From the sequence record MW879344.1: a DNA stretch of 64,000 nt, one strand, 5' to 3'. Position 1 is the stretch's first letter, and each line of letters begins with the position of its first letter. Shown in pieces: positions 3,481 through 49,433 of the stretch. The translations under genes were made by a program, and so were the position numbers. The notes beneath the pieces were generated by a model that was not told where the DNA came from, ran no database searches, and was given only the letters and a program-made list of their open reading frames with translations.

Positions 3481-4620
3481 ATGATTGACGATCAGATGAA
3501 CGGTTTTGAAGCGGAACAGCAGCCAGCGAAACGTACTCGTAAGCCACGTGCAAAGGCGACGAAACAAGCTGAACCAGTAACTATCGATCAAGATGTGTTC
3601 GAACAAGAACAAAAAAATCTGCCAGTACTGCGTGATGCTAAAGGCACACAAATGGAACTGACAGTATCGAACATCCATTCGTTGGGTTCAGATGCTGGTC
3701 AGAATATTGGTAAATTGTCAGAAGAAATTCTGTCTAAAGTAAAAGTTGCAAATACTGGTGAACTCGGTGAAGGTATTTCAAACATTCTGACTCTGACCCG
3801 TAAAGTCGATATTACACGGCTCGGAACTCAGCAAACAGGTATTCTGTCTCGTGTTTGGAACATCTTTGGTGATACTAAACAAAAAGTACTCGACCAGTTC
3901 GAAACCAGCAAAGACCAGATCGAAAAGATCACTACTACATTAAGTACTGGTATTGATCGTATGCGTGGTGAAGCAGTTTGGCTTGAAAATGCATATGACG
4001 CTAACATTGAATATCTCCATGAACTAGAAGATATTCTGGATAACGTCGATATGGTTAAAGAGATCGAAGATAAAAAGTTATCAGTACTGATGGGTAATCC
4101 AGATACTCCAATGAACGTTCTGGATGAACAACGTATCATCACTGATGCATTGGACAAACAAGCTGATAAACTTCGCCGTTTAGTTCAACTTGCTAAATTG
4201 ACTGCACCTCAAATTGCATCAATGCGTAAAGTGAACGTTAACACTGTTGAAAAGTTTGAATCTCTAAACACAGTTGTAATTCCAGCATGGAAAAACAACA
4301 TGAGCTTGAGTCTCATCAGCTTGCAACAGAAGAAAGATAACGAGTTGTCAAACATGATTGACAATGAAACTAACCGTCTGTTGAAGGATAACGCAAAAAC
4401 CGTGTCTCAGAACATGAAAGACGCAGCAGCAGCGAACCAGCGTGGTGTTATTGATTTGAATACTCTCCAATCTATCCAGAACGATATGTTGGCTGGTATT
4501 AAAGAAACAATCCGCATCGAAGAAACTGGTCGTCAAGAGCGTAAACAAGCTGCAATTCAAATGCAAAAAATGGATAATGATCTGAAAAATGCACTACGTG
4601 ACATTGCTCAGAAAAAATAA
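3481..4620 (+). CDS. telA: toxic anion (tellurite) resistance protein TelA/KlaA family
   Basis: LGSDAGQNIGKLSEEILSKV, ILSRVWNIFG, TVVIPAWKNNMSL motifs; coiled-coil. Confidence 0.85.
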   Translation: MIDDQMNGFEAEQQPAKRTRKPRAKATKQAEPVTIDQDVFEQEQKNLPVLRDAKGTQMELTVSNIHSLGSDAGQNIGKLSEEILSKVKVANTGELGEGISNILTLTRKVDITRLGTQQTGILSRVWNIFGDTKQKVLDQFETSKDQIEKITTTLSTGIDRMRGEAVWLENAYDANIEYLHELEDILDNVDMVKEIEDKKLSVLMGNPDTPMNVLDEQRIITDALDKQADKLRRLVQLAKLTAPQIASMRKVNVNTVEKFESLNTVVIPAWKNNMSLSLISLQQKKDNELSNMIDNETNRLLKDNAKTVSQNMKDAAAANQRGVIDLNTLQSIQNDMLAGIKETIRIEETGRQERKQAAIQMQKMDNDLKNALRDIAQKK

Positions 4621-37405: not shown

Positions 37406-37747
37406 ATGGAAATTGATTATAAGCTGGTGCGTGAGTTAACTCATGATTTGGAAATGAATGGTCGTCAATTTATTGCACGTGATCGTTTAATTCAGCAAAT
37501 GAAAGCTGATGGAACTTATGATGTTAAGCACGGTCAGGATTTAATTTATTTCCATGTAGTAAGTGGAATGATTAATTCCATTATTGAAAAGATCTTTATG
37601 TACTTAGAATATAAAACTGTAAATGAAGGTCTTGAAAGTGCATTTCGTGGTTTAGTGGAAAAAGAGTACAACGAATATAAAGAATATTATAACCATTGTG
37701 ATTTTTTATCTGCAATGGATAGAAAGTACGGATTGAATCTATTATGA
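37406..37747 (+). CDS. hypothetical protein
   Basis: ORF track. Confidence 0.6.
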   Translation: MEIDYKLVRELTHDLEMNGRQFIARDRLIQQMKADGTYDVKHGQDLIYFHVVSGMINSIIEKIFMYLEYKTVNEGLESAFRGLVEKEYNEYKEYYNHCDFLSAMDRKYGLNLL

Positions 37748-37941
37748 ATATTGAACAAAAACTTACACCTAAGTATTGGGCTGCACATGATTCCCGTACT
37801 GATGATGTTATTTTAAGTACCTTGTTTAAGTACAAGCAAGATACATATGATGAATTAGTGAAGTTGTATGGTGAAGATTGGGAAGATACACATCCTAATT
37901 TGACTATTAACTTAATTGAACTGAAGTTAGTTCAACTGTAA
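37744..37941 (+). CDS. small hypothetical protein
   Basis: coupled ORF. Confidence 0.55.
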   Translation: MNIEQKLTPKYWAAHDSRTDDVILSTLFKYKQDTYDELVKLYGEDWEDTHPNLTINLIELKLVQL

Positions 37942-37951
37942 CAGAATACTG

Positions 37952-38203
37952 ACCGTTGTTGGGATGTTGGCTTAGAGGCAGCAATCATATAATGAGTGTC
38001 GAGAACGATCCGTAATTGGTAAACGTACCACAATGACCAATCGTATAAGTTCAGGGGAAGAAAAGACCGGATACAGTTATGTTAGTACGGTATGCACGGG
38101 CGGCGTATACTTAATACAGGAAAGGTAGGTGGTACTACTTTGTACTGATAAATGCTAACATAGACCCTTAGAGACTTTGGCGTAATAGCACACCATCAAC
38201 GGC
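37952..38203 (+). ncRNA. 23S rRNA GTPase-associated-centre (H43/H44, L11 site) mimic with 182-nt insert
   Basis: GGATGTTGGCTTAGAGGCAGCAATCATATAATGAGT ... GCGTAATAGCACAC matches E. coli 23S 1055-1104; closed by CCGTTGTTGG/CCATCAACGG helix. Confidence 0.85.
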
Positions 38204-38234
38204 TTTTTAATTAAAATAATATATGGTATAACCT

Positions 38235-38567
38235 ATGACTATTAAAGTTAACGGTACTGTAACTGAAGTAAAATCAGTTGAAGTTGATATTAGCATAGTT
38301 GAACTCGAAAAAGCGGCAAATCAGTTGACAAACGGACAACTTCTTATTATATTAAAACGGAAGTTGGTTCAACAATTGATTTCAAAAGATCCTGCACTGC
38401 AAGGTGCAGAACTTTCATGGCATGGTACATGTTGGGAAGTTTTTGATTACTATGATTATCATCATCGTGAAGATAAGTACAAAAAACTTCGTGATTTAAA
38501 TGATGAAGAAAAGTACGCACTATCCACATTCAACGATGTATTTGAACTATTCAGGAAATTACAATGA
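38235..38567 (+). CDS. hypothetical protein
   Basis: ORF track. Confidence 0.6.
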   Translation: MTIKVNGTVTEVKSVEVDISIVELEKAANQLTNGQLLIILKRKLVQQLISKDPALQGAELSWHGTCWEVFDYYDYHHREDKYKKLRDLNDEEKYALSTFNDVFELFRKLQ

Positions 38568-38821
38568 CAGTACAAAAATTTGAAAAGTTACCTATCCAGA
38601 TTGATGCCCTTGAATGGACTGGTAATAATCTTAAAGAGTTAAAAGCCTTTGCGAGTCCAAAAGAAGTAAAGATTAATAATATGGGTCATTGCAAAATTGA
38701 AACTTTAGAAGGCTGGTTAACTGCATCGATTGGTGATATGGTCATCAAAGGTGTACAAGGGGAAATTTACCCATGCAAACCTGATGTGTTTGCACTAACG
38801 TATCGTAAAATTGAGGAATAA
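38564..38821 (+). CDS. conserved phage protein (IETLEG...IKGVQGEIYPCKPDVF family)
   Basis: widespread phage motif. Confidence 0.7.
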   Translation: MTVQKFEKLPIQIDALEWTGNNLKELKAFASPKEVKINNMGHCKIETLEGWLTASIGDMVIKGVQGEIYPCKPDVFALTYRKIEE

Positions 38822-42409: not shown

Positions 42410-42485
42410 GCCTTTGTAGCTCAGTTGGTAGAGCGGGAATCTCTAAAATTCTTTGTCGTCGGTTCGAGTCCGACCATCGGCACCA
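42410..42485 (+). tRNA. amber suppressor tRNA (anticodon CUA)
   Basis: GGAAT-CT-CTA-AA-ATTCT anticodon arm, canonical D/T arms, ACCA end; two mismatches in acceptor stem. Confidence 0.85.
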
Positions 42486-49311: not shown

Positions 49312-49433
49312 GGCGAGTTAGCTCAGTTGGTAGAGCAGGAAAAAAACCGATTCTTGTATTGAATCGTACAGCAAACAATACTATTGCACTTTTAATGCCC
49401 TTGTCGGGGGTTCAATTCCCTCACTCGCCACCA
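49312..49433 (+). tRNA. tRNA-Lys(UUU) gene interrupted by 46-nt helix/ACAGCAA insert (49340-49385)
   Basis: removing the insert gives GG|GCA-CTTTTAA-TGCCC, a perfect 76-nt cloverleaf with ACCA. Confidence 0.85.

Follow-up and report, generated by a model that had tools for sequence, protein, structure and literature searches.

A phage RNA family resembling the GTPase-associated centre of 23S rRNA and its possible role as a decoy for ligands of the ribosome

Why should a phage keep, in a short gap between two of its genes, a stretch that reads like a functional centre of the ribosome? The DNA that raises this question, referred to here as the window (a stretch of 64,000 nucleotides from record MW879344.1), comes from an Erwinia/Serratia jumbo phage of the GAP32/CBB 'Rak2-like' group. 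Phage pEa_SNUABM_49 is 100% identical to the window and Serratia phage BF is 99.7% identical (901 nt tested). An earlier note on this DNA had described two separated segments that, when joined, resemble the GTPase-associated centre (GAC) of 23S rRNA. Re-reading the window showed that both strings had been quoted correctly, GGGATGTTGGCTTAGAGGCAGCAATCATATAATGAGT at 37961-37997 and GCGTAATAGCACACC at 38180-38194, and that the features said to bound them are present: a closing helix formed by CCGTTGTTGG (37953-37962) and CCATCAACGG (38193-38202) with one U·U mismatch, and a run of five T residues after the helix, at 38204-38208. The element as we delimit it, an RNA gene of about 250 nt, occupies window positions 37953-38202 on the plus strand and sits in a 293-nt gap that separates the plus-strand open reading frames 37744-37941 and 38235-38567. 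Its parts, with the 23S positions to which they correspond, are as follows.

37953-37962, plus strand: 5' strand of the closing helix P1, CCGUUGUUGG, H42-like, paired with 38193-38202; G37962 corresponds to 23S G1055
37964-37988, plus strand: H43-like hairpin with the loop CUUAGAGGC, 23S 1057-1081; A37974 corresponds to 23S A1067
37989-37993, plus strand: the 1082-1086 turn, AUAAU, with A37989-U37993 in the place of the 23S U1082-A1086 pair
37994-37997, plus strand: 5' strand of the lower stem of H44, GAGU, 23S 1087-1090
37998-38175, plus strand: accessory domain (the 'insert' of the earlier note), a three-way junction whose base helix co-varies in the family
G37998-C38175, U37999-A38174 and C38000-G38173, plus strand: base helix of the accessory domain
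38001-38002, plus strand: junction GA of the accessory domain
38003-38006 with 38049-38052, plus strand: helix Pa of the accessory domain, which co-varies
38053-38056 with 38165-38168, plus strand: helix Pb of the accessory domain, AGGG/CCCU
38169-38172, plus strand: junction UAGA of the accessory domain
38176-38179, plus strand: conserved single-stranded linker UUUG, joining the accessory domain to G1091
38180-38192, plus strand: upper hairpin of H44, GCGUAAUAGC (23S 1091-1100), then A1101, C1102 and A1103; A38184 corresponds to 23S A1095
38193-38202, plus strand: 3' strand of P1, CCAUCAACGG, paired with 37953-37962
38204-38208, plus strand: U-run directly 3' of P1; the sequence YUUUUAAUU follows P1 in the window's lineage and is kept in all jumbo-phage relatives

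Likeness to 23S rRNA and the fold under selection

We compared the element with fetched 23S sequences, namely that of Salmonella LT2 (NR_076079) and a Staphylococcus fragment. The joined halves aligned to both without gaps, as had been claimed for E. coli 23S, with 43 of 52 positions matching in Salmonella and 45 of 52 in Staphylococcus, and the 15-nt exact run was found in the fetched sequences as well. The 5' half matched 23S at 30 of 35 positions, compared with 25 of 35 for the best of 200 window shuffles; the 14-nt 3' half matched at 12 of 14, which is not significant in the shuffle comparison when that half is taken alone. The Rfam bacterial LSU model, a comparison that the earlier note had asked for, aligned the 5' half at its own positions 1095-1146, with a score of 13.3 bits and an E value of 0.061 when 451 nt were searched, and one relative, L122, scored 31.4 bits against the same model (E = 5e-6). 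At the gathering threshold of Rfam 15 the window matched tRNAs only, with no family for the element; at E ≤ 10 the element region gave the sub-threshold LSU match and nothing else, and 14 relatives likewise gave only tRNAs and sub-threshold LSU matches. The loops CUUAGAAGC and GUAAUA and the AUUUAAAG junction, the sequence marks of the GAC, are all present. Across the family the consensus departs from that of bacterial 23S at 1055-1104 only in an accessory arm, the UUUG linker and the change U1101A, and its identity to the GAC is about 46 of 50.

The likeness is confined to this domain. The LSU model covers about 50-70 nt only, position 1101 is A or G in the family rather than U, and the genuine 23S continuation (the H42 kink-turn and H45) is absent, the flanks being phage open reading frames or tRNAs. 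The record Pd_22F provides a contrast, as genuine 23S runs on there beyond the matching stretch. Two differences from E. coli had been read as compensatory. The change at 1082/1086 is real and occurs throughout the family, whereas U-A in place of A1090-U1101 looks compensatory only when E. coli serves as the reference: bacteria ordinarily have GAGU at 1087-1090, the tetranucleotide of Firmicutes 23S and of the Rfam LSU consensus, and it is E. coli, with GAAA, that departs from it.

For the fold, we aligned 125 distinct cores with the interior of the variable segment removed and imposed the known GAC secondary structure, so that the GAC pairs were taken from the known rRNA structure and tested by counting. 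Thermodynamic folding of single sequences gave no useful signal, the element scoring z = -1.0 and the insert -0.36, and RNAalifold mis-paired the GAC halves when run on the whole element, so only its insert helices were used. Standard pairs filled 91.6% of cells, as against 65.2% in shuffles, and changes on both sides were seen in 21 of the 25 pairs. The covariation score was 0.651, compared with 0.159 in shuffles and at most 0.18 when partners were slid by 1-3 columns, and none of 500 shuffles reached it.

Each helix contributes to this signal. P1, usually 7-10 bp long with a mode of 9 bp, shows compensatory changes in nine of its ten pairs, the tenth (1055-1104) staying G-C in 122 of 125 cores. 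H43 is paired in 99.1% of cells, with both-sided changes in all six pairs; at 1058/1080, for example, GC occurs 46 times, UA 42, AU 26 and CG 6. H44 is paired in 100% of cells. Its pair G1087-C1102 is present in 125 of 125 cores, U1090-A1101 in 122 with U·G in the other 3, and G1091-C1100 is invariant, whereas the pair 1092-1099 (CG 94, UA 27, UG 4) co-varies with position 1072.

This last relation has a structural meaning: in the rRNA domain, position 1072 and the pair 1092-1099 form a base triple that fastens the loop of H43 to H44. The tertiary contacts of that domain, which are said to have been described by Conn, Gutell and Draper in 1998 and, separately, by Wimberly and by Conn in 1999, reportedly comprise this triple, the 1082-1086 pair and U1060-A1088. 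All three recur in the phage RNAs. The triple is C/C/G in 94 cores, U/U/A in 25, U/U/G in 4 and C/U/A in 2, a distribution whose score was reached by 0 of 500 shuffles; the 1082/1086 pair is UA in 87, CG in 19 and AU in 13, the window having A-U; and U1060 and A1088 are each present in 125 of 125. U1094 (125/125), G1089 and A1085 are also invariant, while G1093, A1095 and A1098 were fixed by the extraction pattern, and rare A1095G and U1094A variants appear in the set of members anchored on the 5' half. A1067 is less constant, with A in 97 and G in 25 of the 125 (20%). A1061, which stabilises the tertiary fold of the isolated RNA (PMC1802607), is found in 46 of 125 members.

Since both the helices and the tertiary contacts co-vary, the tertiary fold of the rRNA domain is under selection. 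The earlier note had preferred selection on the tertiary fold to a dead rRNA fragment, and this distinction is borne out by the excess of pairing over shuffles, the compensatory changes and the co-varying triple. Comparative sequence evidence strongly supports the reading that the RNA has been selected to adopt the GAC fold on its own, as an autonomous copy. A rival origin would be a piece of host rDNA, captured and now in decay, or else a chimaeric assembly. Pieces of host 23S do exist in some 'phage' records (Pd_22F and several short unverified ones), but this explanation is almost certainly wrong. The same locus recurs in many independent complete genomes. The check on relatives and chimaeras that had been called for found the same element at the same locus in eight near-identical complete genomes, which is not what an assembly chimera would give. 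Moreover, the family holds at least 172 distinct versions with compensatory changes; the arm, UUUG, A1101 and P1 are absent from real 23S and common to phages of unrelated hosts; and the window's copy does not match the variant of its own host, which in Enterobacterales is GAAA with U1101.

A variable arm between positions 1090 and 1091

The two halves of the GAC copy are separated in every member by a segment placed between U1090 and G1091, 23-365 nt in length with a median of 178. The first and last 3-4 nt of this arm pair with each other in every member, pairing at the base of the arm having been a selection criterion, and these pairs co-vary. Most inserts are unrelated in sequence. The three-way-junction module of the window, consisting of the GUC/GAC base, GA, Pa, Pb and UAGA, was found in 33 of 172 distinct inserts; within it, Pa takes the forms GAAC/GUUC, GAGC/GCUC, GUUGA/UCAAC, GUGG/CCAC and GCGG/CCGC, and the GA-rich junction of the arm is conserved. 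The linker UUUG that follows the arm has two invariant U residues in the alignment of 125 cores and at least 90% conservation at its last two positions, and the variants UUUA, UUCG, UUAA and UUGG occur in the 5'-anchored set, which is unbiased for the linker. The 3' strand of H44 runs on without a break from C1100 to A1101, which would allow the lower part of the helix to stack on the upper as in rRNA while the arm leaves sideways.

The segment had previously been read as a self-splicing, group I-like intron that splits the rRNA mimic and activates it by splicing. Some eukaryotic rRNAs carry group I introns near LSU position 1090, and in the window the segment is preceded by U and has G as its last base, both of which would suit such an intron. 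The family as a whole makes this reading very improbable. Arms of 23-80 nt are too short for a group I ribozyme, the arm ends pair with each other instead of forming P1/P10 helices with exons, and in members whose linker reads UUUA or UUAA the terminal base is A, not G. Comparison among relatives yields a three-way junction with co-varying helices, in which the P3-P9 core is absent. The Rfam group I and group II models (Intron_gpI, gpII) matched neither the window, searched at E ≤ 10, nor any of 14 relatives, searched at E ≤ 1, and inspection of the window's insert revealed no guide sequence complementary to ...GAGU. Neither the intron nor the proposed splicing switch survives this comparison: on this evidence, the arm is not an intron, and the locus would give rise to an unspliced RNA.

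We also considered whether the window's insert mimics the sarcin-ricin loop, as it contains the strings AGUACGG and GACCGG. These are not kept even in XaC1 or fHe-Yen9-03, and the idea was rejected.

Spread and genomic surroundings of the family

Counting IMG/VR contigs, cultured phages and contigs of metagenome-assembled genomes (MAGs), the family comprises at least 214 copies with at least 172 distinct cores, in a set that is biased towards members retaining the search patterns. Copies with 75-80% identity occupy the corresponding locus in GAP32, CBB, XbC2, Kaldavass and fHe-Yen9-03/04, and XaC1 has a more distant one there. In IMG/VR, an exact pattern from the 3' half (TTTGGYGTARYARCACAC) gave at least 120 matches, and about 100 of the loci listed carry the 5' half upstream; a scan anchored on the 5' half contributed about 65 further loci. 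In one-genome-per-species contigs, the same 3' pattern identified full elements in 41 of the 120 matches listed, mostly in MAG contigs. Several of the MAG-contig elements are identical to those of viral contigs, and we read the MAG copies as phage or prophage DNA. The pattern CCTTAGAGANTTTGG-N9-CACAC is specific to the jumbo-phage subgroup, giving one chance match in metagenomes and none in genomes. Cultured carriers include the Pseudomonas phages pf16, Milchi, Astolliot and UNO-G1W1, Aeromonas phage 4_4572 and Xanthomonas phage XacN1. The hosts or bins span many phyla, with phages of both Gram-negative and Gram-positive hosts represented. Two loci (L222 and L125) hold two different copies each. 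The element is unannotated in every GenBank phage examined, and a full-text literature search, with thin coverage of subscription journals such that an earlier report is possible, found no description of such an RNA.

The gene keeps close company with tRNA genes. A tRNA lies within 20 nt of the element in 67 of 175 distinct members and within 2 kb in 115 of 175, and all 556 of the tRNAs within 2 kb are on the strand of the element. Where a tRNA follows, it most often begins 4 nt past P1; the pf16 copy lies between tRNA-Asn and tRNA-Pro. The window itself contains 20 or more tRNA genes, all on the plus strand, the nearest being 2.6-3.9 kb from the element, which places it among the roughly one third of members that have no tRNA within 2 kb. 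From this spacing and shared strand it follows that the RNA is probably expressed and processed like a stable RNA, and we infer co-transcription with the tRNAs and release by tRNA processing. In the window's lineage, the U-run probably marks the 3' end of the transcript and may act as its terminator. A pattern scan called no terminator there, the 'loop' enclosed by the helix being very large. A T-run is present in 29 of 129 members without a following tRNA, so that the U-run is not a feature of the family but one kept in the jumbo-phage subgroup.

Such an arrangement could also arise if the element were a structural or processing part of tRNA-array transcripts, for instance a spacer that directs RNases or a stabiliser of the precursor, and its likeness to rRNA were incidental. 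The embedding between tRNAs with spacings of a few nucleotides fits this view. We nevertheless regard it as quite unlikely, as a spacer needs neither about 46 of 50 positions of GAC identity nor invariant loops and a co-varying triple, and about a third of members have no tRNA within 2 kb.

The surroundings also bear on the partner of the RNA. The search for a recurring neighbour protein family found none, the best candidate being present at 14 of 174 loci, and the open reading frames flanking the element in the window have no counterpart in Pfam, their only matches being to PHROGs without a known function. A position in the 5' UTR of a ribosomal-protein operon was not seen either, the neighbours being tRNAs or open reading frames of unknown function. 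Because no neighbouring protein is conserved, a partner supplied by the host is indicated.

Candidate functions and comparison with known systems

These observations suggest a model in which the locus would be the gene for a stable, non-coding, trans-acting and unspliced RNA of about 250 nt. The RNA is predicted to fold as an autonomous GAC, the 58-nt uL11/thiostrepton domain made up of H43 and H44, which a phage-specific helix would clamp shut and from which the variable arm would exit through the 5' strand of H44 at 1090/1091. In most phages it would be made as part of a tRNA-array transcript and freed by tRNA processing, and in the jumbo-phage lineage the transcript would end at its own U-run. 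Having retained the fold and the loop nucleotides, the RNA would be expected to be bound by whatever recognises the GAC, above all the uL11 of the host. In general terms, we give a probability of roughly 0.55 to the reading that phages of many phyla use such a replica of an rRNA domain either to strip exchangeable uL11 from ribosomes, with RelA and the stringent response silenced and termination altered, or as bait for a widespread class of host immunity factors that would disable ribosomes at the GAC.

Of the specific forms of this reading, our working proposal, to which we give somewhat less than even odds, is that the RNA accumulates to high copy, captures uL11 and in this way competes with ribosomes, both for that protein and for ligands that bind the uL11-rRNA surface. 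RelA activation requires uL11, and ribosomes would be shifted to a uL11-poor state in which RelA is not activated and RF1-dependent termination is impaired. Capture of uL11 would be the most direct expectation, because the C-terminal domain of uL11 recognises exactly the folded 58-mer (PMC1802607), and the breadth across many phyla fits a universally conserved target. The proposal is weakened by the fact that ribosomes already carry most of the uL11 in the cell. As uL11 has been reported to act specifically in RF1-dependent termination (PMC1802607), reduced RF1 function might leave a trace in stop-codon usage. TAG stops made up 15.3% at member loci and 18.1% at control viral loci (p = 0.16), and amber-suppressor tRNAs were not clearly enriched (14 of 1,005 versus 1 of 200 in controls). 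We therefore set aside a link to RF1 or amber suppression, for which neither suppressor tRNAs nor TAG usage offered family-level support. As separate observations, 14 of the 15 suppressor tRNAs close to members are CUA, and the window's lineage has a tRNA(CUA) together with TAG stops at 1 of 88.

The ligand may be one other than uL11, since the conserved U1094 and A1095 and the largely conserved A1067 are contacts of factors, drugs and toxins. In the ribosome, the exposed nucleotides of the H44 loop and A1067 mainly contact these and not the C-terminal domain of uL11. One such alternative, which we consider possible but on balance doubtful, is that the RNA is a decoy or pseudo-substrate that absorbs an attacker of the GAC sent by the host or a competitor, sparing the ribosomes that the phage needs. 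The attacker might be an ADP-ribosyltransferase, a nuclease, a modifying enzyme or a thiopeptide-like ligand, and the RNA would possibly meet it in a uL11-bound form. Tre23 illustrates the kind of enzyme concerned, as it ADP-ribosylates H44 at about nucleotides 1095-1098 and blocks the EF-G GTPase (PMC8661411). Its target in the H44 loop is nearly invariant in the phage RNA. Phage tRNA arrays can be read as counter-defence cargo, and the logic of an attacker decoy would be analogous to that of phage tRNAs that counter tRNA-targeting defences; the position of the gene in such arrays, the lack of a linked protein partner and the hosts of many phyla would all be expected. On the other side, no known anti-phage defence directed at the GAC came up in the literature search, a stoichiometric decoy is weak against a catalytic enzyme unless it binds very tightly, and A1067 is not strictly conserved.

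The surface contacted by translation factors (A1067, A1095 and both loops) is likewise kept, and this raises the alternative that the RNA traps a factor that docks at the GAC, such as EF-G, the EF-Tu ternary complex, IF2, RF3 or RelA, and so alters translation or stringent signalling directly instead of through depletion of uL11. Munishkin and Wool reportedly found in 1997 that EF-G binds oligoribonucleotide mimics of the thiostrepton domain in vitro. We think a factor trap unlikely: factors bind the isolated domain far less tightly than the whole ribosome, and the mimic has neither the sarcin-ricin loop nor the stalk-base site for uL10/bL12, P1 being variable and without conserved H42 features.

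If our general reading is right, this would be the first known case of a viral RNA that reproduces a functional ribosomal centre in a molecule of its own, and a function would be assigned to one of the genes other than tRNAs in phage tRNA arrays. Should the RNA act by stripping uL11 or as immunity bait, 'rRNA-domain decoys' would form a new category of viral counter-measure. The family is common and unannotated, and it has existed long enough to diversify among phages of both Gram-negative and Gram-positive hosts. It may offer a handle on why phage tRNA arrays hold RNAs other than tRNAs, on whether phages use RNA to interfere with the stringent response or with the make-up of ribosomes, and on whether bacteria have immunity factors aimed at the GAC. 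For the GAC fold it amounts to a natural experiment, in which evolution has re-discovered the base triple and the stabilising A1061 in an isolated RNA, and the tolerance for an arm at 1090/1091 could serve RNA engineering and the structural biology of uL11/thiopeptide complexes. With a covariance model of the family in annotation pipelines, these loci would no longer be left blank or mistaken for rRNA contamination.

Several known systems share single traits with this RNA. Group I introns of LSU rRNA genes also interrupt a conserved rRNA-like sequence after a U, but none of their defining features is present here. Phage tRNAs, tmRNA and the ROOL and GOLLD RNAs occupy the same genomic niche in large phages, on the tRNA strand. 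ROOL and GOLLD are tRNA-associated RNAs of unknown function. The phage RNA has no sequence or structure relation to any of these and no Rfam match, and, unlike theirs, the fold that it imitates can be identified. Pseudo-ToxI, which neutralises ToxN, and 6S RNA, which mimics open promoter DNA, follow the logic proposed here, in which an abundant RNA titrates a protein; they act on another class of target, and the decoy activity demonstrated for them is one that we infer for the phage RNA. The leaders of ribosomal-protein mRNAs (L10(L12)4, L1, S8 and S15) resemble it as extra-ribosomal RNAs that imitate the rRNA site of a ribosomal protein. Those leaders are cis-acting 5' UTRs of ribosomal-protein operons in which only local structure is mimicked, whereas the phage RNA is a separate gene of tRNA arrays, has no ribosomal-protein gene nearby and copies nearly the whole domain, sequence included.

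The closest relative in form is the 23S GAC itself (E. coli 1051-1108; H43-H44). Over 1055-1104 the two have nearly identical consensus sequences; they also share both hairpins with their junction, the covariation of the 1082-1086 pair and of the 1072·(1092-1099) triple, and the invariant U1060 and A1088. In contrast to the ribosomal domain, the phage RNA is free-standing and phage-encoded, is closed by a variable helix in place of the H42 kink-turn and uL10 site, carries an extra arm and UUUG between 1090 and 1091, and has A rather than U at 1101.

Host 23S rRNA sequence and divergent members of the family

Searches for further copies of the GAC-mimic RNA, which resembles the GTPase-associated centre of 23S rRNA, also gathered genuine ribosomal sequence. 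One such locus, in Paenibacillus phage Pd_22F (L378; MZ092003.1), has a 23S-like stretch at about 83,600-84,050 of the record. Because true 23S rRNA sequence runs on past the GAC region there (GAGUGCGUAAUAGCUCACUGGUCGAGUG...), the sequence indicates that this stretch is host rDNA, captured or contaminating, and not a GAC mimic. Host 23S fragments also account for several short 'phage' records labelled 'UNVERIFIED' and assigned to Staphylococcus, Listeria and Escherichia. In the IMG/VR contig L370, a match to the 5' half is followed directly by GCGUCAUAGCUCACUGG and the arm, the variable segment that splits the rRNA-like sequence, is absent; the match belongs either to a true rRNA gene carried by a 'viral' contig or to a variant of the GAC mimic without an arm.

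Two GC-rich IMG/VR contigs (L050 and L052) carry a divergent relative, which retains UUUAAAGAGU and CCCUUAGAGACUUUG on either side of an arm of about 390 nt, together with the ...AGCACAC end, and has changes in both GAC loops (GGGGGUAGAAUCUC; GCCGAAAAGC). These contigs may show what becomes of the family once the rRNA-like loops escape constraint. Two phage contigs have two GAC-mimic elements each, L125 and L222, the latter with GAGU at oriented positions 4038 and 5246; on both contigs the copies differ from each other, as do their arms.

Genes downstream of the element

Three further features of the window lie 3' of the element:

38564-38821, + strand, second ORF downstream of the element, 85 aa, with PHROG matches
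42410-42485, + strand, amber-suppressor-type tRNA with anticodon CUA (ARAGORN; Rfam tRNA, 60 bits)
49312-49430, + strand, tRNA-like gene (Rfam tRNA, 46.5 bits)

The ORF matched several PHROGs, each of unknown function, and had a weak match (E=4e-4) to a 'nucleotide pyrophosphohydrolase' PHROG. In other phages, removal of ppGpp has been linked to MazG-type enzymes; as a clue to such an activity here, the match is too weak to build on.

The tRNA with the CUA anticodon, which ARAGORN named 'tRNA-Pyl', is present alongside near-total avoidance of TAG stops. Across the whole window, 88 non-overlapping + strand ORFs of at least 80 aa end in TAA (65), TGA (22) or TAG (1). Since ORFs in the window are not interrupted by TAG, the codon has apparently not been reassigned to an amino acid.

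ARAGORN called no tRNA at 49312-49430 despite the Rfam match. The acceptor, D and T arms of this gene are intact; it encodes CCA and folds well (z=-3.0), and a 62-nt segment replaces the anticodon arm of roughly 15 nt. Either the gene encodes a tRNA with an intron, or its product is a tRNA-like RNA whose arm has expanded.

A recurrent junction module in the arm

Comparison of arms identified a GA-rich three-way-junction module, NNC-GA-[Pa]-[A-GGG...CCC-U]-UAGA-GNN, in which Pa is an arm helix:

38001-38002 and 38169-38172, GA and UAGA of the junction module in the window

The module is kept in 33 of the 172 distinct arms, and its carriers, which besides the window include L023, L048, L056, L100 and L294, are otherwise unrelated. 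The module may serve in protein binding or docking, as a motif of the kink-turn or loop-E kind.
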